Shown here: piece after piece, positions 2,606 to 31,190 of the stretch
Layout of the letters: each line of letters begins with the position of its first letter
Position numbering within the stretch: the stretch's first letter is position 1
IMG/VR virus record: IMGVR_UViG_3300028864_000016
Location: 62,001 to 126,000 of that record
DNA: 64,000 bases
Reading direction: 5' to 3' (one strand)
Program-made: the position numbers and the translations under genes
Notes under the pieces: model-generated
Told to the model about the DNA's origin: nothing
The model's input: only the letters and a program-made list of their open reading frames with translations
The model's database searches: none

Positions 2606-3178
2606 ATGACATTAGATGATTTAGAAACAATTAACAATTTTCAAGTATTTGAAGATTTCATTCGTGAATTTATAATTTTAGATACTGACTTATTTAAAAT
2701 GATTTATTATCCTCAAAAAAATCCGTTAATTCAAGCAGATGAGGAAAATCCTTATAAAATATTTGAAGAAAGTGAAAGTAATGAGCATGGGGTAGTCTTA
2801 TTTGGTGCGAAAAATAATGAAATTTTGAATACTTCTAATATTGTTATTTTGATAGATTTTGAACAAACTCCTAAAGGAAATTTACAAGAATATAATACAG
2901 TATATATTATAATTCGTACAATTCTAAAAGGAGATGTGCAAAAATTAGGTAATGGATTAGATAGAGCATTTATAATTGATAAACTTATCGAAAATCAATT
3001 AGATAGGTCTACTTTGACAGGATTGGGTGAAATAAAAAAGACAAGTTTTAAACCACTTCCATTGAATGAGCAGAATCAAGGTTATATAGCTATGTATAAG
3101 GCAACATCATTTGCTTATGATTTTTTGAACAATAAGAATATACAAAAGAAATATTTTGGTGGTGAATATAATGAATAG
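2606..3178 (+). CDS. Putative tail terminator/completion protein
   Basis: 190-aa ORF two genes upstream of the tail tube; positional inference. Confidence 0.4.
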   Translation: MTLDDLETINNFQVFEDFIREFIILDTDLFKMIYYPQKNPLIQADEENPYKIFEESESNEHGVVLFGAKNNEILNTSNIVILIDFEQTPKGNLQEYNTVYIIIRTILKGDVQKLGNGLDRAFIIDKLIENQLDRSTLTGLGEIKKTSFKPLPLNEQNQGYIAMYKATSFAYDFLNNKNIQKKYFGGEYNE

Positions 3179-4043
3179 CGATTACTTAAAATTTCAGTTG
3201 AATAGGGGACTGGATATTATATTTAAAGATAAGAACCATCAACAAATTAAAGTTAAACAATCTAGAATTTCTGATATTGATGAAATAGGATTGCTAACTT
3301 ATTTAACTTTAACTTATATCTTTAGAATTCAAAAAGAACAGTTGAAATTATATGAAGATATTCAAGATCAATTGAAAAGCAAATCACTATTTGAATCTAT
3401 TGTAATACATGAAAATATATTAAATAGCAAAAAAGATTTTAACATTTCGGAATCAATGGTTATGTTACTAATACAATCATTGGCTTTCTTTTTAGATATT
3501 AAAGATTTTAATAGGATTGGAGTTTCTAATAATGTAGACGCTATAATTGTTTATGATTTTAAAGAACTTGAAGGACAAGTATATAAAGTTCCTATATTTG
3601 AATTAAATAATGATAACTTTGAAGAATTTAGTGAATTAATAAGAACGATAACTTGTACAGATGTAATTCAAGAAGAAAAAGAAGAAATGGATATGTTAGA
3701 ACATTATGACGATGAAGAACTACAGAGACTTCTAGAAGAACAATATAGAATATACAAAGAAGATAAGAAAAAGGAAGAAAATGAAAATAAAATAACTATT
3801 GATGAAGTTATAGCTTCAGTTTGTATGAGTGAGAATAGTAAATATAATTTTACTAATATTTCAGATTTAACAATTTGGCAACTTAACTTCTATTTTAATT
3901 TCTTGTTAGAAAAAGAAAATATTGAGATAGTTAAATCTCAATTTACTTCTGGAAATTATAACTTTGAAAAAGCTCCAGACTTAAATTGGATTAAGAAAAC
4001 TAAAATTAAATTAACAAAATGTAAAAAATTATTAAATGAATAA
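3171..4043 (+). CDS. Hypothetical tail-region protein
   Basis: ATG at 3171 preceded by GGTGGTG RBS, overlapping the previous stop region; in frame with ORF 3156..4043. Confidence 0.45.
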   Translation: MNSDYLKFQLNRGLDIIFKDKNHQQIKVKQSRISDIDEIGLLTYLTLTYIFRIQKEQLKLYEDIQDQLKSKSLFESIVIHENILNSKKDFNISESMVMLLIQSLAFFLDIKDFNRIGVSNNVDAIIVYDFKELEGQVYKVPIFELNNDNFEEFSELIRTITCTDVIQEEKEEMDMLEHYDDEELQRLLEEQYRIYKEDKKKEENENKITIDEVIASVCMSENSKYNFTNISDLTIWQLNFYFNFLLEKENIEIVKSQFTSGNYNFEKAPDLNWIKKTKIKLTKCKKLLNE

Positions 4044-4113
4044 ATTAAGTTCCTATAATTTCCATAGGAACTTTTTTATTATATAAAAATGTAAAATTTA
4101 AGGAGGAATATTA

Positions 4114-5217
4114 ATGGCAACTATTAATGAAAGATTTGGTATTTTAAATGCGAGTCAAGTAAAATTGAGAAATAGAACAACAAATAAATTATTACTTAAG
4201 ATACCACAAGCAAACAAATGTACATTTGAATACAAAACTACGGATAAATCAGCAAAGGAACAAGGTATAGAAAAACTATTTTGGTCAACAACACCAGTAG
4301 CAACCTACAAAATGGAAACTGAAACTATATCTTTTGCTCAACTTGCAGAAGCATTAGGTAGTGATGGATTAGTATTAAATACTGAAAATGAATCTTACTA
4401 TAAGGAAGAAGTATTTGTAGTAACAACAGATGGAACTTTAGTTCTTAATTTAAAATCTGAACCTATGAATGGAACAGTGATTAATTTTAATAAATTATCA
4501 CTTGGTGGAGAATTAGACATATCACTAGTTGGTGTAGTAGATGCTACTGATAAAAAGAAATTTACTATTACTAATTCAGAGTTAAGAATTGGGGATAAAG
4601 TTGAAGTAAATTATACAGAAGTTTTATCAGCAGGACAAGTTTATACATTTAAAGTATATGGTAATAAACAAGTAGATGCTAAAGAACTACAAGCAACCGT
4701 ATTAAGAAAAAATGTTGCTACAAATAAAATAGAATTAATGGATATGATTATTCCAAATGTAGTTATTCAATCTGGTGTAACATTATCATTTGACGCTGAA
4801 AACCCATCAAAATTTGAACTGAATTTCAAAGTACTTGGAGATCCGTTTAATACTGATGATGAAGGTAATCCATTATTCTGTGAATTTAAAGCAAAAGCAC
4901 CAAAAATTCCTGTAACTCCAATTGCTGATTTAGCAGGAGTATCAAATGTATCAACAAAAATTGATTTAACATTTACAGCACCAACTTCTTCAACATCAGT
5001 AGTATTAATGTATAAATTAAGTACAGATAGTACTTATAGTGCAGTGGCTACTAGTGGAACAACTGGGGTAAGAATAGCTTCTCCATTAACTGATACAAGT
5101 ACTTCAACTCAAGTATTAGGGCTAACGGCTTCAACATCTTACAATTTAAAAATTGTAGTAACAGGTGGTATTCATGAAGGTGAATCTAATCTTGTAACAA
5201 TTGTAACTATACCCTAG
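4114..5217 (+). CDS. Major tail tube protein with C-terminal FN3/Ig-like domain
   Basis: 367 aa, strong AAGGAGG RBS; beta-rich core ending ENPSKFELNFKVL; C-terminal FN3-like segment (IDLTFTAP...GLTASTSYNLKIVV). Confidence 0.7.
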   Translation: MATINERFGILNASQVKLRNRTTNKLLLKIPQANKCTFEYKTTDKSAKEQGIEKLFWSTTPVATYKMETETISFAQLAEALGSDGLVLNTENESYYKEEVFVVTTDGTLVLNLKSEPMNGTVINFNKLSLGGELDISLVGVVDATDKKKFTITNSELRIGDKVEVNYTEVLSAGQVYTFKVYGNKQVDAKELQATVLRKNVATNKIELMDMIIPNVVIQSGVTLSFDAENPSKFELNFKVLGDPFNTDDEGNPLFCEFKAKAPKIPVTPIADLAGVSNVSTKIDLTFTAPTSSTSVVLMYKLSTDSTYSAVATSGTTGVRIASPLTDTSTSTQVLGLTASTSYNLKIVVTGGIHEGESNLVTIVTIP

Positions 5218-5272
5218 TAATCCTACTAATATAGTAGGTCAATCAATACTAGGAGAAATGATTGTTGGATAA
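5212..5272 (+). other. Candidate +1 programmed frameshift (CCC-UAG) adding 18 aa SNPTNIVGQSILGEMIVG to the tail tube protein
   Basis: CCC TAG at 5212-5217; +1 frame open to TAA 5270-5272; 7-bp hairpin cctacta/tagtagg at 5222-5238. Confidence 0.6.
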
Positions 5273-5408
5273 AAATATAATCCAATATATTGTTGATTGA
5301 CAAAAGAATAAATTAAATGAATATTAAGAATGAGTATCTATATGGTACTCATCTATTAGTATTATAACAAATAAATTAAAACAATATATAAGGGAAGTGA
5401 ATATATAA

Positions 5409-5846
5409 ATGGACTTTAATTCAATAGGAGAAATGTATGCTGAATTAGAAAAACAAATTAAAACGGATTTGATGATAGAAGCACAAAAAATACATTTGGC
5501 AATTCAAGATTATATTATATCAGATATATACCAAACGTATAGTCCAAAATTCTATGACAGAACAGGAACTCTTTTAAATAGTATTGAAGTATCTCCTGTT
5601 AAGAAAAATGGAGATGAATATACTATTGAGATATATGTAAAAGATGAATTACATGATATAGCTTTTTGGGAAACAGGTGAACAAAGAACATTGACCGAAA
5701 TACTAGAATATTTTGCTGAAGGGCATGGATATGGTCGAGGTGGAATTAAATTAAATCCAATGCAATCAGTATGGGAAAATGAGTGTAAAGATGTAATTAA
5801 TAATCTTTTAGACTATCTTAAAAGGCGTGGTTTTGATTTTACATAA
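5409..5846 (+). CDS. HK97 gp10-like tail/neck component
   Basis: Motif YSPKFYDRTGTLLNSI typical of gp10-like proteins; 145 aa. Confidence 0.55.
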   Translation: MDFNSIGEMYAELEKQIKTDLMIEAQKIHLAIQDYIISDIYQTYSPKFYDRTGTLLNSIEVSPVKKNGDEYTIEIYVKDELHDIAFWETGEQRTLTEILEYFAEGHGYGRGGIKLNPMQSVWENECKDVINNLLDYLKRRGFDFT

Positions 5847-6026
5847 TAAGAAAATAAATTGTTCATTTTATTGCAATATAAATTATTTAAACAAATTAAA
5901 AGAAATAGTATTGACTTTATTTTTAAAATGGAGTAATATTACATTAAAGATAATTTAATGTATAAATAAATAAAGTCAATACATAATTTGAAAAACGTAT
6001 ATTTTAATGATGTTCTCCGACATCAA

Positions 6027-6155
6027 AATTTATTTAATGTATGTATGAGTAGTTATGACTAGGGGTAGCTCCCTTAGTCAGATTATTCTAATTAAATAAA
6101 TAATGGGGAATATGATTAAAATGTATGTGAAATTAATACATACATTAAATAAATT
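6027..6155 (+). promoter_or_regulatory. Structured 5-prime leader of the antirepressor gene
   Basis: Perfect 20-bp inverted repeat 6027-6046/6136-6155 enclosing hairpin tgactaggggtagctcccttagtca (6056-6080); TTGACT-17-TAATAT upstream at 5911-5939. Confidence 0.55.
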
Positions 6156-6179
6156 AAAATAAAAAGGAGATGTTTCATT

Positions 6180-7142
6180 ATGGAACAAAATAAAATTATT
6201 AAACTATTTACAGATGAAAAAGTAGAAGTAAAGGAACGAGAATTCACAAAAATTTTAGGTGGTTTTTCAGAAACAAGTCCCGTAATTACTGATAAACAAA
6301 TCGGAGATTTACTTGGATATGCAAAAGGTGCTAGGCAGGTTAGAGATCAAGTTAATAGTAATTTACAACATTTTACGAGAGATGATATTATTGATTTACA
6401 ACGTGGAGATGGGAGCGACACGTTTGCTGAAGTATTGAAAACACTAGGCTACGCAAAACAATCTATAACACAAGCTAAAAATATTTATGTGTTTTCTGAA
6501 GCAGGTTTTCTATTATATTTAAAGTTTGCCGAAGGTGATAAATCAGTAGAATTATACAAAGATTTTATTGAAGACTACTTTAAAACAAAAGCTGAGAATA
6601 TAGTAATGGAAAAGACATTAGAAGAAACTAAGCAAGCACTAATTGATGAAAGAAAATACATATTAGGTAGTGTTATTTTTGAAACTGATACAACTAAGAA
6701 AATGCAACTGTTACAAAGAGATAAAAAATTAGAAGAACAAATAAATGAAATAGAAAAGACTTTAGCTAAGGAAGAATTAATGGAACAATTAAAAGATAAA
6801 TTAGCTATTGCATATGCATTTGAACAATCTAATAAAGAATATAGTATTGGTACATTTGCTAGATTCTTAAATATTAAGAATTTCGGACAAAATAAATTAT
6901 TTGAATGGATGAGAGATAGCGAAATATTAATGAAAAACAATGAGCCATATCAAAGATTTATGAATAATTTTCATGTTATACCAGTTAAGAAAAATAAATT
7001 TACTGGTAGTAAAACTTTGATTAAAGCAAATGGAGTATCATACATAGTAAAGAGATTAATAAAAGATGGTAAAATTCAATCTAAAACTTACGAGGAAATT
7101 ATAAATGATATCAATGAAAATTTACAATCAGAAGCTAGTTAG
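6180..7142 (+). CDS. Phage antirepressor, C-terminal KilA-C/ANT domain
   Basis: C-terminal SIGTFARFLNIKNFGQNKLFEWMRDSEILMKNNEPYQRFM...KTLIKANGVSYI matches the ANT/KilA-C pattern; central coiled coil. Confidence 0.8.
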   Translation: MEQNKIIKLFTDEKVEVKEREFTKILGGFSETSPVITDKQIGDLLGYAKGARQVRDQVNSNLQHFTRDDIIDLQRGDGSDTFAEVLKTLGYAKQSITQAKNIYVFSEAGFLLYLKFAEGDKSVELYKDFIEDYFKTKAENIVMEKTLEETKQALIDERKYILGSVIFETDTTKKMQLLQRDKKLEEQINEIEKTLAKEELMEQLKDKLAIAYAFEQSNKEYSIGTFARFLNIKNFGQNKLFEWMRDSEILMKNNEPYQRFMNNFHVIPVKKNKFTGSKTLIKANGVSYIVKRLIKDGKIQSKTYEEIINDINENLQSEAS

Positions 7143-7214
7143 AAATAAATTAATATAAATAAAAATAAATGACTACATAGAAATGGACTAAATTAAATAT
7201 GAATAAAATTATTA

Positions 7215-14861: not shown

Positions 14862-16947
14862 ATGGCTGGTGAATATAAAAGTTCGATACGTCTTGGCGTT
14901 CAGTTAGAAAGTGAAAAAGATGTTAGTGGAAGATTACAAACTTTAATAAATACTTTACAAAAAGAAAAAATTAATTTAGATATAAATATTGCAAATTCAG
15001 ATGTAGCTAAACAATTAGAAACTTTAACTACTTTAGCAAATAATTTTAAAAATAGTTTGGGTAGTAATGTTTCATTAGGTAACGTGAATGAGATTATTAA
15101 TCAAGTTACCTCTGCAATGGTTAGTATGAATGACCAAGTATTAAAGACATCAAGAGTTGATATAGGTGATGGAATAACCAAACAATTAAAACAAACTGCT
15201 GAAGGTATTGGTGTAGTTAAAAGAGAATTACAATTATTAGATAAAGATGATAATAACACTTCTAAAATAAAACCTACAACTACAACAGATTATAATAAAA
15301 TAAGACAATCAATAGAAGATATAACAAAAGCACAAAAGCAATTAAATGCCTTAGAATCTAATGGATTTTCTGATATTAATAAGATTGCTTACTTAAAAAC
15401 TATGCTAAGTAATCCAAATAGTATAGGTTCAGATAATGAATTAAAAGGTTATTTAAATCAAGTTAAAGAATTGTTAGCAACTGAATCAAAAGTTATTGAA
15501 TATTCAAATAAATTAAATTCTCTGAAGTCTAATATGACTAATTTAACCGATGAGAAATATTCAAATGTTTTAAATACACAATCATTTGAACAAATAATTA
15601 ATGAGATAAATAATGCTCAAAATGGATTGAAAAACTTCGATGGTATAAATTTAAACGGCTTAAAACAACAATTTGATGAGTTGAGTGGAACTGTTTCTAA
15701 GTTTAGCACTGAAACTATAAGTTCTCAAAAAGCAGAACAAGATAATATAAAACAAAGAGAAAAATTAGAATCAGATAGGATATCTCAAATTCAGAAAGAA
15801 ATAGATTTAAGCAATAAATTAGTTGAAAATGAACAAAAGAGACAAGTAAAAGATGATTCAGCTAATTTAAAGCAATTAGAACAAGAACAGACTCTGTTAC
15901 AAAAACAAGCAGAAGCATACCAACATATAGACGCATTAAAATCAAACGGAATAGTAAATGAATCAGATATATCTAAACTTGAACAAATGGTTAAGAATTC
16001 TAAATCACTTCAAGATGTACGTAATGCAATTAATTCTATTATGAATACATCAATGATGAAAGAATCGTCTATTGTTACTATGTCTAAACAATTAGATGAT
16101 GCACAAATTAAATTGGATAAAATGAAGCAGAGTTTCGGAAATAAGTTGCCACAAGGCTTCGTAGAATCTACACAATCTGAAATTAATAAATTAAAAGAAG
16201 ATTTAACTAAAGTAGATAGTATGGGATTCAATGGTCTTAAAAATAGCTTGAATCAAGTTAATACTAATATGAAAGTAACCACTAACGAAACTCAACAATT
16301 AGTTAATTCTTTGAAAGAAACTAACAATGGTTCATTCTTTAGTGGAATCTCTAATTTTTTAGGTAAAGTTGGTATTTTTTATGGTGTTCAACAGGTAGTT
16401 CAAGAGATTAGTCAGCAGTTTAAAGATGCTAGTGAATATACTCAATCTTTAGATAAAAATGTGACAAATATTGAAATGATCACCTCGAAGAGTAAGGAAG
16501 AAGTTATTGGATTAACTAATCAATTTAAGGAATTAGGTGCTCAATTACATATAACTAATCAAGAAATGTTAGCAGGGTCAGAAGAACTTTTAAGGGCAGG
16601 TTTTGACAATAACACTACCAATAAAATGCTGGAAGCAAGTTCGATGGCTAGTAAGATTTCAGGTCAAACTACACAGGCAACAACAGAACAATTAATTGCA
16701 ATTAAGAATTCTTTCAATATGACTGGCGACCAAATGCAACATGTAATTGATGTTATTTCTAAATTAGATAATTCTAGTGCTACAAGTTTCGCTGAAATTT
16801 CTTCAGCAATTATGAGAACTAGTTTTAGTGCCCAACAAGCCGGAACAAGCTTTGATACGCTTTCAAGCTATGTAACTACAGTAAGTGAGAAGACTCGTAG
16901 ATCGGCAGAGACTATTGGAGAAGCATTTAAGAGTATTTATAGCAGAT
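14862..16947 (+). CDS. Tape measure protein, exon 1
   Basis: Long coiled coil, then TP901-type TMP core (LGAQLHITNQEMLAGSEELLRAG...TIGEAFKSIYSR); ends at a U typical of a group I 5-prime splice site. Confidence 0.85.
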
Positions 16948-17260
16948 TAATGATAAAAATAGTCTGCCTATACAGTAATGTATAGATAAAAACTAGGTGA
17001 ACCTGTAAATATAGGGTGTGCTATTAAATATAGTGCTAACGATGAAAGTCTAAGTTATTTAATAAAATAAATAATATGATAATATCGTGCCAAGTCTAAG
17101 TAATTAGAAAGGTGTAACGACTAAATTGGATTAATAATCCTAAGAGGTTTGAGGTGAAATTCCTTATTCCGTAGTGCCTAGCCCTCATGTGAGGTGAAGA
17201 GATAGTCTACTCCCACTTTTTAATAAGTGTTAAAGTATAGTGAAAACTAGGGTAAAAAGG
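16948..17260 (+). mobile_element. Group I self-splicing intron (313 nt, no ORF) in the tape measure gene
   Basis: P1: exon GCAGAU pairs with intron GUCUGC with terminal U-G; P2 ctatacagtaatgtatag; R element aacgacta; S element aagagatagtct; terminal G17260; splicing restores the frame SRYYNIKLGNIDEDG. Confidence 0.85.
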
Positions 17261-20200
17261 ATTATAACATAAAGTTAGGGAATATTGATGAGGATGGTAA
17301 AAACATAAATGACGTTGAGAAGGCAATGAATAACGTCGGTATTGCAATTCGTTCATCTAAGGGTGAGTTTAAGGATTTCGATGAGGTTTTAAATGAATTT
17401 GTGAATAAATATAAAAAAGGAACAATGAGTCAAGTTGATTTCTTAGCTGGAATAAACACGCTCGGTGGTTCTAGACAGAAAGAGACGATACTTAGTTTAG
17501 TCGAGAATTTCGACCAAGTTAAAAAACATCAAGATGATTTAACAAAAGCTACTGGTTCAGCTAAACAAATGTATGATGTTTATTCTCAATCTTTAGAAGC
17601 AAGAATATCTGATCTAAAAAGAGCATTTGAAGGATTGTATGAAAAAATAATGTCTTCGGATTCTTTAAAATGGCTAGTTTCAGAAGCTACTAATTTAATA
17701 ACTGCACTATCAAATCTAGATGGAAAATCAATAACATATATAGCAACAATTGGAACATTAAGTTTAGCATTGTCAAAATTAGTTAAAATTAACAAAGAAT
17801 TGATGCTATTAACTACAGAAGGTGGAATAGTAACTGGATTAACTAAATTTATTGGATTAGCTTCGGGAATGGTATCTTTAGAGAATGGGGCTACCGGTGT
17901 AGCAACTGCATTTGGTGTATTAGGAACTAGTATTAAAGGAGCTACTGCATCCGCTATGGGTTTTATAGCTACGCCAATTGGTTTAGCTATAACTTCAATC
18001 ACTGCTGTTATAGGAGTTGCAATTTATGGATTTGTTTCGTATCAACAACATCAAGCTGAGTTAACAGAACAATCTAAGTCTCTTAAATCAGCACTCGATG
18101 GCGTTAATAATTCTCTAAAGGGTGGAGACACTACTAAGGCACAAGAAGAAGCTAACAAAATGAAATCAGCACAAGAAAAGTTACAACAATATATTGAGTT
18201 AAGAAAGAAAGCACAAGATACTGATTCTAAATCATTAAATCCTACTGCAAGCGGTACAAACCAAACATCTGTAATAGAAGGGTTTAATCAAAAAATTAAA
18301 GAACAAATAAAAGTACTTACCGATGCTGGTTATACAGTTGAAGAAACTACTGGGAAAATAAAAGAATTTACTGACGCACAAGATAAAATATATAATACTA
18401 AAATAATAAATAGTATTAAAGAACAAACAAAATCACAATTAGAACATAGAGAAAATTTAGACAAAGTACAAGCTGAATATAATAATTATATTTCAACAGT
18501 TAAAAATTTGTATACAGAATATCAAAACTTATCTGCACAAGAAAATTTGTCGGCGGAACAAAAAACTAAACTACAGGGTACAGTAGAACAATTACAAGGT
18601 AAAATGAGTGGATTGAATGTCTCTATTGATGAAAATGGAAAAGTATTAATTTCAAATTCACCATTAATAGAAGCAAATATTCAGAAATTAATATCAGAAG
18701 GACTTACAGTTGATAATTTATCAGCTATTCGTATAACAGATTCTAAGGTAAATTCTCAATGGCAAGTAGGGAATTCTCAAGTTACATATAATGAAATAAC
18801 AAATAGAATTGAAATGTATAAAGCTGAGATAAAAGCGATACAATCTGTTATTCAAGCAAGAATGGCTGGGGCATCTGATTATTCAACGATGAGTATAGGT
18901 AAAGCACAAAGTCTAGAAGCTGGTTCACCAGAATTTGATAAACTAAAAGAAGAAACTGACCAATTACATGCGTATGAGAAAGCGAAAAAAGAAGCAGATG
19001 ATTTATATGCTGGGATAGGAAGTGTTGCATATTCTGCTCCTAGTGGAGGTGGTGTACAAACACCATCTAATGGAGATTATATGCCTTCTGGTGGGGATTC
19101 TAGCGAGAAAAAAAAGGCAGAAAAAGAACTTGAAGATTCAGAAAAGAAAATGTTATCTAATATCACAGATGCTTATAAACAAGCAAAAGATACTATATCG
19201 AATAATATTGAAGAAATAGATGCAAAGATAACTGGATTAGGTGATATAGATGATTCTAATTTTACTCAAAAAGTTTCACTTGTAAATGATAAAATAGGTG
19301 AACAAAAGCAAATAGTTGAAAAAGCACAAGAACAGTTAGACTCTTTAAAAAATACAACGGTAACAACGGCAGATGCACAAAAGGAACTTGAATCTGCAAC
19401 TTTATCTGCATCGAAGGAATTACGACAAGAAAGTTTAGAAGTAGCAAAATTACAATCAGAAATTGAAAAAACTGATATTGATGAACTAAAGAAAATGTAT
19501 GAAGATCAACAAAAGATTGAAACAGAAACTTTAGAAGCTAATCAAAAAGCACAAACAGATAAAATAGAATCTATTAAGAAAGCACAAGAAGATGCACATA
19601 ATGAGATAATGGATGACTATGAGGATGAATTAGATGCTTTAGATAAAAAATCTAAGAAATTAGATGAAGATAATGACAAGATAGATAGAGCTAATGAATT
19701 AGAAAAAGAGAAAAATGATTTAACAGAAAAACAAAAAGAGTTAAATAATGTTAAAAGTCAATTAACTAATCAAGTATATCAAAAGCAAGCAGATGGAACA
19801 TGGCAATTTGAGTATGTTGCAGATACTCAAAAGATTGCAGAAAAACAAAAAGAAGTTACAGAAGCACAAAAAACTCTTGATGATACAAATAGAAAAAATT
19901 CACTAGATGATGCTAAAAAAGAAATAGAAGATAAAAAAAGTGTTATTGAAGCTGATAAAAAAGCAGAAGATGAAGCATATACAAAGAAGAAAGCATATTT
20001 AGATGAGTATTCCTCTTATTTGAAAGAATCACAAGAGAGAGACACGAAACGTCTCGAGAATCATTATTCAGATATTGAAAAAATGGCAAAAGATACATTA
20101 AAGAAATTAGAAGAAGAGCATAACAATGATTGGAATGCTATTTCAGATTCAATTTCAGCTACACTAACTAGAACTAAAAAAGCATTAGAAGACTTAACTA

Positions 20201-21180
20201 CATTAAGAGCTAATTTTACAACTTCGGAAGCAAATGATGCTATTAATAGTGGGGATGTATCAGGATATTTAACAAAAAATAAAGATAAAATGAATTTAAA
20301 AGCAAGTGTAGATGAAAGTGATATAGATTCTCATTTAAATTCTATTAGTGACAAAGCAGATAAGGCTAACAATTCAGTTACTATATTGAATAAAACTTAT
20401 GACGAATTATTATCAAAGAAAAGCATTAATATAACCGAAGCTGATATTAATAATAAGAAAGTTCAAGTTCAAAAGCAAGTAGATATAGATAATGAAGGTT
20501 TAACAACTACTTTGAATAATTTAAAAGCTATTAATCTAGCAATTGAAACAGAAATAGACTCTCATTATTCAAAGGTAATTGACAAGCAAACTCAAGCACA
20601 ACAAAATGAGATGACTAGCTTACAAAACTTTGCAAAAGAATATACTATTTATTATAATAAATTCCTAGAATTAGTACAAACAGTTAATGACTTTAGATTT
20701 AATAATATTGTAGTGAATGTACAAGCATCTGTAGACAATGTATTACAAGGATTAGAAGTTATAGCAAAGGCTTATGAAAAATATGCTAAGGCATATAATA
20801 AAATGCACCCAGACGATACTATTTCTTCTAGTATTGATATATCAGATGTACAAAGTGCGAATACATCCTATAAAAAATCCGTAAGTGATTATCAAGCTAA
20901 TGTATTGTCATCATATTCTGCCGAAGCTTTTGAAAAATATGCAAGTCAAATTGGAAGTGGAATAGGAGATAGTTTATTGAGTAAGTTAAATAATTATAGT
21001 AGTTCTACTAGTAATATTAATAACACAAATAACGCTTCCACAACTAATAATAGTAATAAATCTACAACATCTAATACAACTAATGTAAATATAAATCAAC
21101 TTGATGTAAATACAAAGGACGCACAAAATTTATTAAATCAATTGTTAACAATAGTTAAAAATAAAACAAATTTGAGTTAG
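17261..21180 (+). CDS. Tape measure protein, exon 2 (spliced product 2001 aa)
   Basis: Frame is open upstream of ATG 17326 back to 17261; hydrophobic membrane segments, then long coiled coil; 2086+3920=6006 nt. Confidence 0.85.
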
Positions 21181-23852: not shown

Positions 23853-26498
23853 ATGGCTGTTCAAAAAATAGTACAAGGAAGTTTGTATCAAAATGGTCAA
23901 CAAATACAGTTCTCATCTGCACCTGCAACATATACAAGCAATGCTGTTTTAGAATTAAGATCAAGTGGAACGGATATAGAATGGTTAGTTATAAAAAGTG
24001 GAGCACATGAATATTTATTATCCACTAAAAATTTATTGAGTGGTATAAGTTATAATCAATTAAATATCCAAGGGTTCGTTAGTGGAAATTCATTGATTGC
24101 AATTGGAGATTCACAGTATAAGATTAGATTAATTACTAGTCAAGAATGGGATAATTTTGTATTAAATCAAATAAATTTAAATTCATTATTAACACCGAAT
24201 GCAGATGATTTAAGTGGAAATTATAATTCTATAACTATTACTAGTTCTGATACAAACAACTTATTACATTGGTGGAACTCCCCTTCATTAACTAAAAATA
24301 TCAGTGGAAGTAGTGTAATTGTAAGAGGTGGGAATGCAATTGGAACATCTAATAATATATCAATAACAGATAATTCGAATTACAGAATTGTATTAGAAAA
24401 ATATAATCTACCACCAGTTATTAGTGATAGTGATAGGTTTTTAGGTAATTTTACATCAAGTATTATACAAGAATATTCTATAGTAGACCCTGAAAATGAT
24501 TTATTTAAAATAGAAGAAATTTTAGATGGAACAGTGACTAAAACTCTAGAAAATCAAACAAGTAAAACTAAATTTACATATAGTTTATCAGGAACTCCGT
24601 GGAACAACCTATTAGCTGGTCAACATAATGTAAAAATAAGAGTTACGGATACATGTGATAACATTGTAATTAGAAATTGGACTTTTAATAAAATAGTAGA
24701 TACATCAACTGGTACGTCTGCAAATCTAACTAGACCAGTTATAACAACACCTATTAACTCCCTTTCTTTAAGTCCTATAAATGCTTTAGTAGATAATAAA
24801 ATAAATTTCACAGTAACAGGTGGTGAACTTGTTTACACAAATGAAATTAGTATAGTAGATAATTCTGATTCATCGGTAATTGTTTATAATAAAAAGTTAC
24901 CTGAATTATTTGATTTTTATAATACTATTCCATTAAATACATTAATTAATGGAAAAACATATCAAATAAAAATTCGAACATATAACTCAAGTGGACAATA
25001 TTCGGCATGGTCTGATACTGTACTGGTAAAATGTTTAACTCCACCAAATTTAATAATAACAACAATAATTGATGGAATGATAAAGAGTCCAAACCCTGTA
25101 ATGATGGCAACTTACAATCAAAGTGACAATGATGAATTGTATAGTTATGTCTATAATTTGTATAAAGATGGTGCTTTAATTTTATCTAGTGGTGTTCTAT
25201 TAGATAAATTAAGACAATATCAATTTTCAAATTTAGATAATAAAACAAATTATACAATAGAATTAAAGGTTAGAACTGCAAGTGGAATGGAAACTAGTAT
25301 TTCACAAGATTTTTATTGTGTATTTTTACAATCGAAATTACCAGCAGTTATAAAACTAGAAAATAGTCCAACCACTGGTAGTGTAAAAATAACGAGTTAT
25401 GTAAGGCAGATACGAGGAAGGATTTATAGTGGCGATAATATAAATTATATTGATGATGAGTGGGCAGATTTGCATAATACGGTAGTAATATGGGATAAAG
25501 ATGGAGCATTTCGTATAGAAGGTGATTGGACTGCTAAAATATGGGCAAGAGACTTGGAAGACAATGATGTAATGTTAGTCAAATTTAGTTTAGACGATGG
25601 TACATATATTCAATTAACTAGGTTTGAAAATATGTTTTCATTAACAAAAATAGTTGCTGGAGTAAAACTATATGAATTACACTCATTTGTTTTAGGAGAT
25701 ATATTACTTACAGACCAACTATATTTCTTTATTCAAAATGATACAAATTTAGGATTAATGAATTTTGATGTAAAAAGAGTTACAGAAGGAAGAACTACTT
25801 GGTTTTCTAAAACATATAATGATGATACTATGCCAGATTACGCTAGTGAAAATGGATTTTTAAGTGGTATAAATGACAATTTAAAAAATTCACTACTTAA
25901 TAATAATATTGATGGGAATGTAATTAAAGCTTACATTCCAACACTTGACGAATTATTACAATTAGATAATAATGCAAAGCTGGGAGAAGCAATAGTAGGA
26001 GCAATGGTTTTAGGAAATAGTGCAAGTTCTATAGATATTAATTCTGATGTAGATTATTTTACAAGAACGATTGATAGTATGAATAATAATAAATTAAAAG
26101 TAGTAAAAGCTGATGGGACTATTGGTAGTGATTATCCTAGTAGTAAATTAGGAATAAGATTTATAATTAAAATTTCAAATATAACAAAAGTATCAACTTA
26201 TAAAGATGTTGAAGATGATTGTTACAATTTAACTTTTAAAATATTAAAATTATTTAGTATACAAAATATTAGTAATTTAAAAGTAGGAGATAAAATAAAA
26301 ACAAATTCAGTTAAATATAAAAACAAAATAATTAAGTTTACTATTTGTAAGAAAGATGATACATCAGTTTATTTGCTATCAGATGTCATAACTGAAAAGG
26401 AATTTGACAATTCAGAATCAGTATATACAAATGGAAATCCAAATTGGAGTTTATCAAATATAAATCAATGGCTAAATAGCAATATAAAAATAGGCTAG
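23853..26498 (+). CDS. Large tail/baseplate protein with FN3-like and DUF6273-like segments
   Basis: LINGKTYQIKIRTYNSSGQYSAWS (FN3-like); NGNPNWSLSNINQWLNS and YIPTLDEL resemble DUF6273-type domains. Confidence 0.55.
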   Translation: MAVQKIVQGSLYQNGQQIQFSSAPATYTSNAVLELRSSGTDIEWLVIKSGAHEYLLSTKNLLSGISYNQLNIQGFVSGNSLIAIGDSQYKIRLITSQEWDNFVLNQINLNSLLTPNADDLSGNYNSITITSSDTNNLLHWWNSPSLTKNISGSSVIVRGGNAIGTSNNISITDNSNYRIVLEKYNLPPVISDSDRFLGNFTSSIIQEYSIVDPENDLFKIEEILDGTVTKTLENQTSKTKFTYSLSGTPWNNLLAGQHNVKIRVTDTCDNIVIRNWTFNKIVDTSTGTSANLTRPVITTPINSLSLSPINALVDNKINFTVTGGELVYTNEISIVDNSDSSVIVYNKKLPELFDFYNTIPLNTLINGKTYQIKIRTYNSSGQYSAWSDTVLVKCLTPPNLIITTIIDGMIKSPNPVMMATYNQSDNDELYSYVYNLYKDGALILSSGVLLDKLRQYQFSNLDNKTNYTIELKVRTASGMETSISQDFYCVFLQSKLPAVIKLENSPTTGSVKITSYVRQIRGRIYSGDNINYIDDEWADLHNTVVIWDKDGAFRIEGDWTAKIWARDLEDNDVMLVKFSLDDGTYIQLTRFENMFSLTKIVAGVKLYELHSFVLGDILLTDQLYFFIQNDTNLGLMNFDVKRVTEGRTTWFSKTYNDDTMPDYASENGFLSGINDNLKNSLLNNNIDGNVIKAYIPTLDELLQLDNNAKLGEAIVGAMVLGNSASSIDINSDVDYFTRTIDSMNNNKLKVVKADGTIGSDYPSSKLGIRFIIKISNITKVSTYKDVEDDCYNLTFKILKLFSIQNISNLKVGDKIKTNSVKYKNKIIKFTICKKDDTSVYLLSDVITEKEFDNSESVYTNGNPNWSLSNINQWLNSNIKIG

Positions 26499-29228: not shown

Positions 29229-31190
29229 ATGGCAGATATAATTTTAGACCAATTAGGACTTAAAGCAGGTGATATATTTAAACAAAGTGATGTCGAAAAA
29301 ATTGATTCAAACGCAACTAAAACTCAAGATGCAATTAATTTGAATTTTAATAAAATTGGAGTTTTAACTACTAACGGAATAACAGAACCAGACTTAGCTA
29401 CTGCTATAAAAAATGACCGTACACAATTATCAGGTATTCCGAACCAAACATATATAACCGAAAAGGCAAAAACAATAGATGTAAATAATGCACTTGCATT
29501 AAAAGCAGATAAAACATCATTGGATTCTACTAATGCTAATGTAACAAATAATACAAATTCTATAGCAACACATACATCACAAATAGCAAGTTTATCAAGT
29601 GGATCTCCAAAAGGTGTATATGCAACATTATCTGCATTACAAACTGCTTATCCAACTGGAAATGCAAATACTTATATAGTAAATGGAGATATAAAAGAAG
29701 TTGATACATTAACAGTTACTGCTATTCCAACTGTGGCAGGAAATATCACTATTACTCTTAATGGAGTTGCTTTTACAGTAGCATTAACTTTAGCAATGAC
29801 AACAACAGATTTAGTAGCTACAGCTATAAGAGGAACTACTTTTAGTGGATGGACAACAGGTGGAAGTGGTTCAAATATTACATTTACAAAGGTAACTAGC
29901 GGAACAAATACATCACCTATTTTTAGTGGTGGTACTACAACTTCAACGGCTACATTTACAATTACAACATCAGGTGTTAATGCAGATTATGGTTGGTATT
30001 ATTGGAGTTTAAGTGCATGGAATAGAGGCAATACTTACCAAAGTACAAGTTTAGCAGATGGAGCAGTAACACCAGTAAAAACATCTTTTTTCGTACTCAA
30101 TGCTATCAACCTTTTAGACCCAACTAAATTTGTCGCAGGAACATCAGTCAATTCAGTCAATGGTGCAGTAGTAAACGATGCAAACTATTGTGCAAGTGGC
30201 TGGAGAATAATTAGCCCAAGTACATCATATTGTGGATATAAAACAAAATTTTATGCTTTTTTTGATTCGGCTTTTGCTTATATTTCTGGTGGTGCGACAT
30301 TAGATTCATACGTTACGTCACCATCAAATGCTACATATATGCGTGTGGCATTTTTAACCGCTGACACAAATAAGGCAATATTAGTGCAAGGTACGTCATG
30401 CCCTGAAAAAATAGTTTATAAATTTCAAATCGAAACGGAAGTCAATGAAAATATTATTAAAATGCAATCAGATATTATTGGACTTAAAGGGAAATGGTAT
30501 GGCAAAAACGCATTATGTATAGGTGATAGTTTAACAGCCGCAGGGGTGTGGCAACAAAAACTGAATACCATACTTGGAATGACTGTAACAACTCACGCAC
30601 TGGGTGGATTAGGATTAATAGAAATGGTTGATGGTGGTACAAATTCAAACGGTACTTTAGCACCTCTTACGAGTAGTGATGTAGCAAATAAAGACTTAAT
30701 AATAGTTTATGGAGGATATAATAACCGAGGAACAGCAGATGGTATTATTGGAGATATTTATCCTACAAACAACACGATAGCAGGATTATTGCAGTATGTT
30801 GTTAATAAGATTTATAGCCTATTAACAACAGCAAACAACTTAAAATGTAGAATTGCAATTGTAACACCACATTGTGCAGGTAAATATCAATTTATTGACG
30901 CTGACGGATATACTGAATATGCACCCGGTACAGGCAGAACAATGAAAACACTTGCAAAAAAGATTGAGGAAATTGCAAATCTCAACTCACTACCATGTTA
31001 CAATGCTTGGGAAAACAGTGGTATTAATAAATTTACTTGGAATGTATTTTCTGCATCTCCTAATGCTTATGATGCAAGTGGTAGCCAAGGTGGTACATAT
31101 CCTAACAATTATGACCAGTTACATCTTAATTCTTCAGTTGGTTATCCACATTTAGGAGAAAGAATTACTAGTTTTATTGAAACAATATAA
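29229..31190 (+). CDS. Tail-associated SGNH/GDSL hydrolase (spike/esterase)
   Basis: Block I CIGDSLT, block III GGYNN, block V DQLH; N-terminal coiled-coil anchor. Confidence 0.7.
   Translation: MADIILDQLGLKAGDIFKQSDVEKIDSNATKTQDAINLNFNKIGVLTTNGITEPDLATAIKNDRTQLSGIPNQTYITEKAKTIDVNNALALKADKTSLDSTNANVTNNTNSIATHTSQIASLSSGSPKGVYATLSALQTAYPTGNANTYIVNGDIKEVDTLTVTAIPTVAGNITITLNGVAFTVALTLAMTTTDLVATAIRGTTFSGWTTGGSGSNITFTKVTSGTNTSPIFSGGTTTSTATFTITTSGVNADYGWYYWSLSAWNRGNTYQSTSLADGAVTPVKTSFFVLNAINLLDPTKFVAGTSVNSVNGAVVNDANYCASGWRIISPSTSYCGYKTKFYAFFDSAFAYISGGATLDSYVTSPSNATYMRVAFLTADTNKAILVQGTSCPEKIVYKFQIETEVNENIIKMQSDIIGLKGKWYGKNALCIGDSLTAAGVWQQKLNTILGMTVTTHALGGLGLIEMVDGGTNSNGTLAPLTSSDVANKDLIIVYGGYNNRGTADGIIGDIYPTNNTIAGLLQYVVNKIYSLLTTANNLKCRIAIVTPHCAGKYQFIDADGYTEYAPGTGRTMKTLAKKIEEIANLNSLPCYNAWENSGINKFTWNVFSASPNAYDASGSQGGTYPNNYDQLHLNSSVGYPHLGERITSFIETI

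Follow-up and report, generated by a model that had tools for sequence, protein, structure and literature searches.

In siphophages, +1 shifts at a CCC codon followed directly by a stop are known to add whole Ig, FN3 or carbohydrate-binding domains to a fraction of the tail tube subunits. The tail tube gene studied here raises a related question: can a shift of this kind deliver a tag of only 18 residues, and is such a tag maintained by selection? The gene lies in a stretch of 64,000 nucleotides, hereafter the window, which represents bases 62001-126000 of the 218-kb virus record IMGVR_UViG_3300028864_000016 (25.8% GC). The record belongs to an uncultured peat phage that is present in at least 18 peat DNA metagenome runs and whose 218-kb genome contains no tRNA genes. 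Comparison with homologous loci makes it probable, in our judgement, that the gene is decoded in two ways, with a +1 slip at its CCC TAG end adding the 18-residue tag in a minor form. The features concerned are listed in Table 1.

Table 1 Coordinates of the tube gene, the elements at its end and the related distal tail motif (positions in the window)
Feature	Position	Strand	Description
Tail tube gene	4114..5217	+	367 aa in the 0 frame: tube domain ~1-255, in-frame FN3 ~270-365
Predicted shift site CCC TAG	5212..5217	+	CCC 5212-5214, TAG 5215-5217; gene end ACT ATA CCC TAG
Predicted +1 extension	5216..5272	+	18 codons 5216..5269, stop TAA 5270-5272
Perfect 7-bp hairpin	5222..5238	+	CCTACTA 5222-5228 / loop ATA / TAGTAGG 5232-5238
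Outer 7-bp helix	5213..5253	+	CCTAGTA 5213-5219 / TACTAGG 5247-5253, encloses the hairpin; role uncertain
Downstream hairpin	5330..5352	+	ATGAGTA / 9-nt loop / TACTCAT, intergenic, past the +1 stop
Motif AKLGEAIVGAMVLG	25974..26015	+	residues 708-721 of the 881-aa distal tail protein 23853..26498, three-pentad pattern

The tail tube gene and its CCC TAG end

The identity of the gene product was assessed by family matches, gene order and fold. Protein databases contain precomputed PF27173 (YomU_Tube) annotations for the tube protein and for all 35 relatives. Residues 5-249 match phrog_2729 (E 2e-27), and residues 276-358 match Pfam fn3 (E 5.5e-5) with 23.7 bits, just missing the cut-off of 25 bits. 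An AlphaFold2 model built from an alignment of 30 relatives reached a predicted local distance difference test score (pLDDT) of 86, with values of 90-96 in the FN3 region, and replaced a single-sequence model that was of no use (pLDDT 34). The top Foldseek matches of the alignment-based model were the SPR tail tube structures 8xkn_B and 8ygm_A (E 7e-11 to 9e-11, template modelling score 0.74 on the target), and its C-terminal part matched many structures of FN3 tandems; a profile search of the PDB sequences gave no match. In the relatives, YomX, YomW and YomV lie upstream of the tube gene and YomN downstream; in the window, genes 3156..4043 and 5409..5846 are conserved beside it, and the split tape measure (14862..21180) and then the distal tail genes follow. 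Because the family match, the synteny and the fold matches agree, the gene is an SPbeta/SPR-type (YomU) tail tube gene with a constitutive in-frame FN3 domain. Compared with the SPR/SPbeta tubes (8xkn, 8ygm, 9jgh; PF27173), the window protein shares the tube fold and the YomX/W/V/N neighbour types, whereas sequence identity is only ~ 15% and the solved proteins are 220-240 residues long and lack FN3.

The last sense codon of this gene is unusual for its genome. In a crude set of 235 open reading frames (ORFs) of the 218-kb genome, on which all codon and stop counts are based, CCC accounts for 39 of the 1021 Pro codons (3.8%), and CCT is ten times commoner. The tube gene possesses a single CCC among its 13 Pro codons, placed directly before the stop, and it is the only one of the 235 ORFs with a CCC-stop end. 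The codons that precede the site are AAT CTT GTA ACA ATT GTA ACT ATA; the 0 frame closes with the tandem stop TAG TAA, and the -1 frame closes after 6 codons. The +1 frame translates as SNPTNIVGQSILGEMIVG, in which a linker of the form [SN]xPx[NS] is followed by three pentads, hhGxx-hhGxx-hhG, where h is a hydrophobic residue. Upstream of the site, this frame is open for 3 codons only, and entry must therefore take place at the last codons of the gene; it contains no ATG, GTG or TTG before codon 15. Across the DNA assemblies from independent peat runs, the site is free of insertions and deletions, so it is not an assembly artefact.

These observations bear out all the sequence claims of the original prediction (the end ACT ATA CCC TAG, the +1 peptide, the 7-bp hairpin and the AKLGEAIVGAMVLG site), as well as its identification of the product as a tail tube, the best fold matches being SPR 8xkn and 8ygm. 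However, an open frame of 18 codons alone is unremarkable at 26% GC, and its significance comes from the homologues.

Homologous gene ends and competing explanations

Is the CCC-stop end with its +1 frame particular to one phage, or does it recur in related tube genes? The DNA of the gene end was read in ~ 20 distinct lineages from viral contigs, metagenomes and Logan assemblies, plus phiCD211; the homologous loci come from metagenomes, and a single contig stands for some of the lineages. One relative carries the label Clostridium beijerinckii, and distant kin infect Clostridioides difficile. A blastn search of window positions 3000-7200 against the phage collection returned zero matches, and tblastn matched only phiCD211-like C. 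difficile phages at 26-28% identity, in which the tube gene ends AAG AAA TAG TAA without the CCC-stop cassette. A family profile search found four metagenome loci (the window's own contig, an L021-type lineage and the L012 contig) and no new tube ends, and the same search over genome contigs found no locus.

A CCC-TAG or CCC-TAA end (together CCC-TAR) was present at 12 of the ~ 20 distinct loci, with TAG at nine and TAA at three; among all ORFs of the genome, TAG accounts for only 18% of the stops. The codon before the stop was CCC at all 12 of these loci and the common CCA or CCT at none, and Pro was the last residue in 12 of the 35 database proteins of the family. According to what follows the site, three types of gene end were distinguished. 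In class A (L009, L010, L011, L012 and L046), the tube domain ends ...T-P, CCC TAG or CCC TAA follows, and the +1 frame encodes an FN3 domain of 94-95 aa (the L046 contig stops after 66 aa); this is the same arrangement as in SPP1. Since class A reaches its FN3 domain through CCC-TAR, the cassette is a working recoding signal in the family. In class C (the window, L031, L014, L023, L053 and L054), FN3 is in frame, the protein ends ...[TI]-P, and CCC TAR is followed by a short +1 peptide; these peptides are, with that of the window first, SNPTNIVGQSILGEMIVG, SNPTNIVGQATVGEMILG, SNPNNIVGFAIADQAIVG, NNPISSGIVGQGTVGNAVVQP, NDPASPLVGIGLIGQMIIG and SLPHSNVIGDAIVGNLILGYYQ. Class E is represented by L044, a tube without FN3 in which CCC TAG is followed by the +1 frame STPENGAIVDLSTVSDTIVG. 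At the loci without a cassette (L005, the L021 and L022 groups, L024, L047, L048 and phiCD211), the gene closes with other codons, in most cases followed by TAA TAA, and a comparable +1 frame is absent. The original prediction had proposed to check CCC-TAR and the open +1 frame in homologues, and the outcome is positive; its view that FN3 is constitutive here and that the shift adds an 18-aa tag only agrees with the in-frame FN3 of the window, while five relatives reach FN3 by the shift.

The next question is whether the short +1 frames carry a coding signature. The seven different peptides (from the window, L031, L014, L023, L053, L054 and L044) have lengths of 18-22 aa and a common motif, namely [SN]-x-P-x-[NS], 0-2 further residues and three hydrophobic-hydrophobic-Gly-x-x pentads, the last of which forms the protein end in most tags. 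Between the window and L014, whose tube proteins are 51-53% identical, the nucleotide differences at +1 codon positions 1, 2 and 3 number 5, 5 and 14, and 7 codons differ only synonymously. The two tags are identical at 11 of 18 residues, whereas random placement of an equal number of changes would lead one to expect 4.7 (P<2e-4); the same test gave P=0.007 for the window and L044 and P=0.0004 for L031 and L014. The two remaining frames contain many stops over the tag stretch, and the +1 frames are open for only 2-11 codons upstream of the site and contain no start codon. Purifying selection thus acts on a peptide that can be reached solely from the tube gene, which is the signature of programmed frameshifting.

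One additional piece of evidence was provided by the RNA structure past the stop. The perfect 7-bp hairpin of the window starts at the fifth nucleotide past the stop, 7 nt beyond the CCC codon, and perfect hairpins with stems of 5-9 bp, starting 2-5 nt past the stop, were found at 10 of the 12 CCC-stop loci. At random positions of the genome, the frequency of equally good hairpins is 4.8%, and six loci without CCC have none. The stems have six different sequences: CCTACTA/TAGTAGG, CTATTTC/GGAATAG, TCCTGCCAG/CTGGTAGGA, CCCCG/CGGGG, CCTCC/GGAGG and AGCCTC/GAGGCT. The fold of the window, in which the outer helix encloses the hairpin, has an RNAfold minimum free energy of -14.6 kcal/mol (z -4.6 against shuffles). 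The outer helix is restricted to the window lineage and represents the non-conserved part of the fold, since it is weakened in L031 and absent elsewhere. Rfam gave no match at the shift site and none at gathering level across the whole window.

In four of the relatives that add FN3, the arms of the hairpin are CCUCC and GGAGG (L009 3796-3830, L010 3802-3836, L011 2843-2877, L046 1644-1678), so that an anti-Shine-Dalgarno-like pentamer just past the shift site is paired with a Shine-Dalgarno-like one.

Taken at the level of sequence, the comparison shows the site, the hairpin and the +1 peptide to be under selection, and the recurring site, the seven like peptides, the coding pattern and the hairpin position support the +1 recoding that the original prediction had read from one gene end. 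Several results weigh against this reading. L005, the closest relative by its tube domain (93%), ends GCA TAA TAA without the cassette, and the tag is therefore dispensable. A perfect hairpin is lacking at two of the 12 loci (in L054 it is interrupted, and L014 shows nothing convincing), and because the hairpin lies within the +1 coding sequence, part of its conservation could reflect the peptide. Moreover, in two wetland metatranscriptome runs, the RNA-library contigs are identical to three stretches of the window, 3905-4055 (shortly before the start codon), 4084-4234 and 4620-4799, none of which covers the shift site; these contigs may be DNA carry-over.

Could the cassette instead be an evolutionary relic of a former access to FN3, left behind once this domain had been fused in frame, with an 18-codon frame that is meaningless and rarely or never translated? 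This would fit the class A relatives, which use the same cassette for FN3, the fact that open frames of 18 codons are not rare at this base composition, the complete loss of the cassette from the close relative L005 and the highly mosaic nature of the tube ends, in which tube domains 81-93% identical to that of the window carry three different C-terminal architectures. However, the cassette is located after FN3 and not at the tube-FN3 junction, so it is no leftover in place, and L044 has the same peptide behind a tube that lacks FN3. A relic would gather stops and indels, yet the length and the motif are the same in seven lineages with tube domains down to 27-53% identity with the window, and the conserved residues show mostly synonymous changes. 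We therefore regard a relic as improbable. An even smaller chance is given to the view that the conserved element acts only as RNA, whether as a terminator, as a stabiliser of the mRNA or as a regulator of the next gene, and that CCC-TAG and the open +1 frame are incidental. The stable two-helix fold speaks for such a role, as does its location, since a terminator would be expected behind an abundant late gene; however, a T run is missing from the hairpins, the window has a separate terminator-like hairpin further downstream and relatives have clear terminators there, the class A hairpin is no terminator because it is within the 95-codon FN3 reading frame, the substitutions show a period of three in the +1 frame, and no Rfam family matches.

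The peptide could also be reached without a frameshift, from an independent small gene, by readthrough or reassignment of the stop, or by transcriptional slippage. Short ORFs are often missed, and TAG is reassigned in some large phages. Nevertheless, an independent gene would lack a start codon, since none is present within the +1 frame or upstream of it; readthrough would add nothing because the 0 frame continues TAG TAA, and three homologues use TAA; TAG is a normal stop in this genome, terminating 43 of the 235 ORFs (18%); and the CCC run is too short for polymerase slippage and does not vary in length across independent DNA contigs. These routes are very improbable indeed, the least probable of the explanations considered here.

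The region behind the tube gene shows some variation. The downstream hairpin of the window is weakly terminator-like and lacks a T run, and a scan for the terminator consensus made no call; at the equivalent place in L005, L009, L010 and L044, TAGACA..TGTCTA plus a T run forms a clear intrinsic terminator. A conserved intergenic block after the tube gene consists of AATATTGA.., TAGACA..TGTCTA with the T run, and GAGTATTTAAA in L005, L009, L010, L011, L024 and L044; the window keeps the flanks of this block and has its other hairpin, without a T run, between them.

Proposed mechanism and known recoding systems

Several phages provide models for a virion protein with two C-terminal forms. In T7, a -1 shift near the end of the capsid gene (10A/10B) adds a surface-exposed peptide of 53 residues that forms no domain to a minority of the subunits; the T7 10B extension and the one predicted for the window are both short C-terminal tags, but the T7 shift is -1, the protein is a capsid protein and there is no sequence similarity. 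Listeria phage PSA (Zimmer et al. 2003, cited in PMC4759559) reportedly makes C-terminally extended minor forms of both Cps and Tsh by +1 programmed frameshifts; as is proposed for the window, a siphophage of Gram-positive bacteria thus recodes the 3' ends of major structural genes by a +1 shift, whereas the PSA extensions are said to be longer. The usual geometry of a frameshift stimulator is a structure that meets the mRNA entrance of the ribosome.

The closest models are tail proteins. In SPP1, the tube gene yields gp17.1 and gp17.1*, which share their N-terminus, by a proven +1 shift at CCC UAA; the rare CCC stands directly before the tube stop, the slip leads to the overlapping CCU, and about one subunit in four carries the FN3-like extension on the tail exterior (PMC6316719). 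The rare CCC before the stop of the tube gene is common to SPP1 and the window, but the 0 frame of the window gene already includes FN3, so that the shift would add 18 residues without a domain, and the tube fold is of the YomU/SPR type, not the SPP1 type. In the lactococcal 936-group phage PhiC0139, the major tail protein is joined to TpeX at a 'shifty stop', CCC.UAG, and the fusion was shown by western blot (PMC4759559). The window has the identical CCC UAG hexanucleotide, and in both phages it closes the gene of the major tail protein; the cargoes differ, being a 22.6-kDa carbohydrate-binding extension that forms visible structures round the tail in PhiC0139 and a predicted 18-aa peptide in the window.

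With these shifty stops, the window has in common the rare CCC at the stop, a +1 frame without a start of its own and conservation in homologues. A folded Ig, FN3 or carbohydrate-binding extension is absent from the window, where only 18 aa follow, and present in L009-L012 and L046. No feature of the prfB (RF2) type was found at the site: a Shine-Dalgarno-like (GGAGG-like) element a few nucleotides upstream is lacking, and the sequence is CCC TAG, not CUU UGA, so that only the principle of a pause at a stop codon is common to prfB and the window.

Since the hexanucleotide of PhiC0139 is shared and CCT is far commoner than CCC, we propose the same P-site slip for the window. Most ribosomes would terminate at TAG and release the 367-aa tube-FN3 protein. 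A minority would slip by +1 during the wait with the stop codon in the A site, the peptidyl-tRNA-Pro in the P site re-pairing from the rare CCC to the overlapping CCU. The shifted ribosomes would read from AGT on and append SNPTNIVGQSILGEMIVG, which would give a minor form of 385 aa. The 7-bp hairpin is a probable stimulator of this shift, as its position would be that of the mRNA entrance of the ribosome. The predicted C-terminal Glu-C peptides are SNLVTIVTIP for the 0 frame and SNLVTIVTIPSNPTNIVGQSILGE for the shifted form. The C-terminus of the tube protein and its FN3 domain would lie on the tail exterior, and this would place short, fairly hydrophobic, glycine-punctuated tags on the tail surface in sub-stoichiometric numbers.

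Mosaic tube ends and a possible role of the tag

How fast do the ends of the tube proteins change relative to the tubes themselves? L005, without the cassette, has a tube domain 93% identical to that of the window and an FN3 domain 59% identical; for L009 (class A), these values are 81% and 44%. The relation is reversed in two class C loci, L013 (37% for the tube domain and 97% for FN3) and L031 (27% and 57%), and the cassette and tag of L031 are nearly the same as those of the window. From these mismatches in identity, it follows that the modules at the C-terminus, which comprise the FN3 types, the cassette and the tag, are swapped much faster than the tube domain diverges. In peat run X14, the phage of the window occurs together with a contig bearing the L031-type cassette. 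Class C could have arisen by a simple path, in which a class E gene received an in-frame FN3 before its CCC.

Two neighbouring features of the tail module deserve mention. An anti-repressor gene (ANT/KilAC, ORF6N; window 6180..7142) lies inside the module, between tube/YomN and the tape measure, as in phiCD211; its product is 86% identical to that of a gene of genome G005, although the tube domain of G005 is only 27% identical, and this gene probably travels with the FN3-cassette block. Further downstream, the gap 16993..17230 splits the tape measure into the ORFs 14862..16985 and 17326..21180 and aligns with the complete group I intron model of Rfam at 38.3 bits (E 3e-8), below the gathering score of 50 bits. 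In phiCD211, a distant relative, a group I intron is annotated at a similar place in the tape measure gene.

The sequence of the tag offers some leads to its role. The last 13 residues of the tags have grand average of hydropathy values of 0.35-2.05, and the window value of 1.4 is moderately hydrophobic. The original prediction had noted an echo of the tag in the 881-aa distal tail protein, and the echo is real: in six frames of the 218 kb, the pattern hG[EDQN]xhhG has only two matches, one in the tag and one in this protein. Homologues of the 881-aa protein keep the motif as ILGKAIVGDMILG, ALGKATIGTMLL and VLGEYVLGTTLL, and it is retained in four genomes, three of which are without the tube cassette; its C-terminal part has a weak DUF6273 match that lies outside the motif. 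A joint gain or loss of the tag and the distal motif was considered and rejected, the motif being present with and without the cassette. The conservation of the motif irrespective of the cassette thus gives no co-occurrence support for a shared function.

When the tail genes of the window were tabulated by presence or absence across four related genomes, only two proved to be found in the cassette-bearing genomes G000 and G005 and absent from three related cassette-free genomes: the adjacent anti-repressor, and the part of 29229..31190, which encodes a fibre-like protein of 653 aa, that specifies the first 130 aa. With two genomes compared with three, this restriction may serve as a lead, not as evidence. 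The N-terminal 130 aa of the fibre-like protein are 63% identical to a 762-aa ORF of G005, and its C-terminal part has a weak match to a GDSL/SGNH hydrolase.

Three-pentad ends were also noted in other virion proteins, picked because they fit the tag pattern. In L121 (IMGVR_UViG_3300009095_000482), the gene of a lambda-E-type major capsid protein (Phage_cap_E; L121:5219-6127:-) ends ACG GGG GAG TAA. In the -1 frame, which could be entered on the G run, it encodes ...GVTGTTAIVGNAKVGESIVG-stop, a three-pentad tag like that of the tube; this is a candidate for -1 recoding. No relatives of the L121 capsid were found in the collection, and scans with P0022, P0008 and the L121 capsid protein gave no further lineages. 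In L077 (IMGVR_UViG_3300045988_179000), a 275-aa Ig-domain tail protein (L077:743-1570:-) ends in frame with NTNIVGFAVAGRAIVG, which closely resembles the +1 tag of L014, and its gene adjoins a Gp10_C-type fibre gene. A scan for the pattern IVG..G..IVG-stop gave 71 matches, of which ~ 60 belong to one abundant unrelated phage protein of 216 aa and were discounted as redundancy. This protein (in L067 and ~ 60 other viral contigs) matches no PHROG and has the C-terminus ...YYLIVGKNAEGGSIVG; as its middle pentad is not of the hydrophobic type, a relation to the tag is doubtful.

The three-pentad peptide appears in four settings: in the tube after CCC-TAR, with or without FN3; apparently in the -1 frame of L121; in frame in L077; and internally in the 881-aa protein. 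On this basis it might be imagined, as a rather speculative idea, that the peptide is a portable virion-surface module that recoding installs sub-stoichiometrically. We suggest, with low confidence, that the tag may act as a strand in docking or adhesion and bind another virion protein, itself or the host surface; the original prediction had considered a possible membrane or surface contact. It could, for example, be a docking strand for a fibre or an enzyme, and the SGNH-hydrolase fibre-like protein 29229..31190 is a candidate partner because its N-terminal 130 aa recur only in the other cassette-bearing genome examined.

In practical terms, gene callers cut products of this kind short, and the peptide motif is a handle for finding further recoded virion proteins. 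What is new in the present case is that one cassette, with a covarying hairpin at a fixed distance, would serve throughout the SPbeta-type tube genes of large Clostridium-like phages with interchangeable cargoes, and that in some of them the cargo would be a conserved peptide of 18-22 aa and not a domain, which implies a function for a very small tag on a minor form. The three C-terminal architectures on closely related tube domains represent a natural experiment on why decorations are kept sub-stoichiometric, and if the docking role is true, a few side appendages could be hung along the tail by means of the tag.

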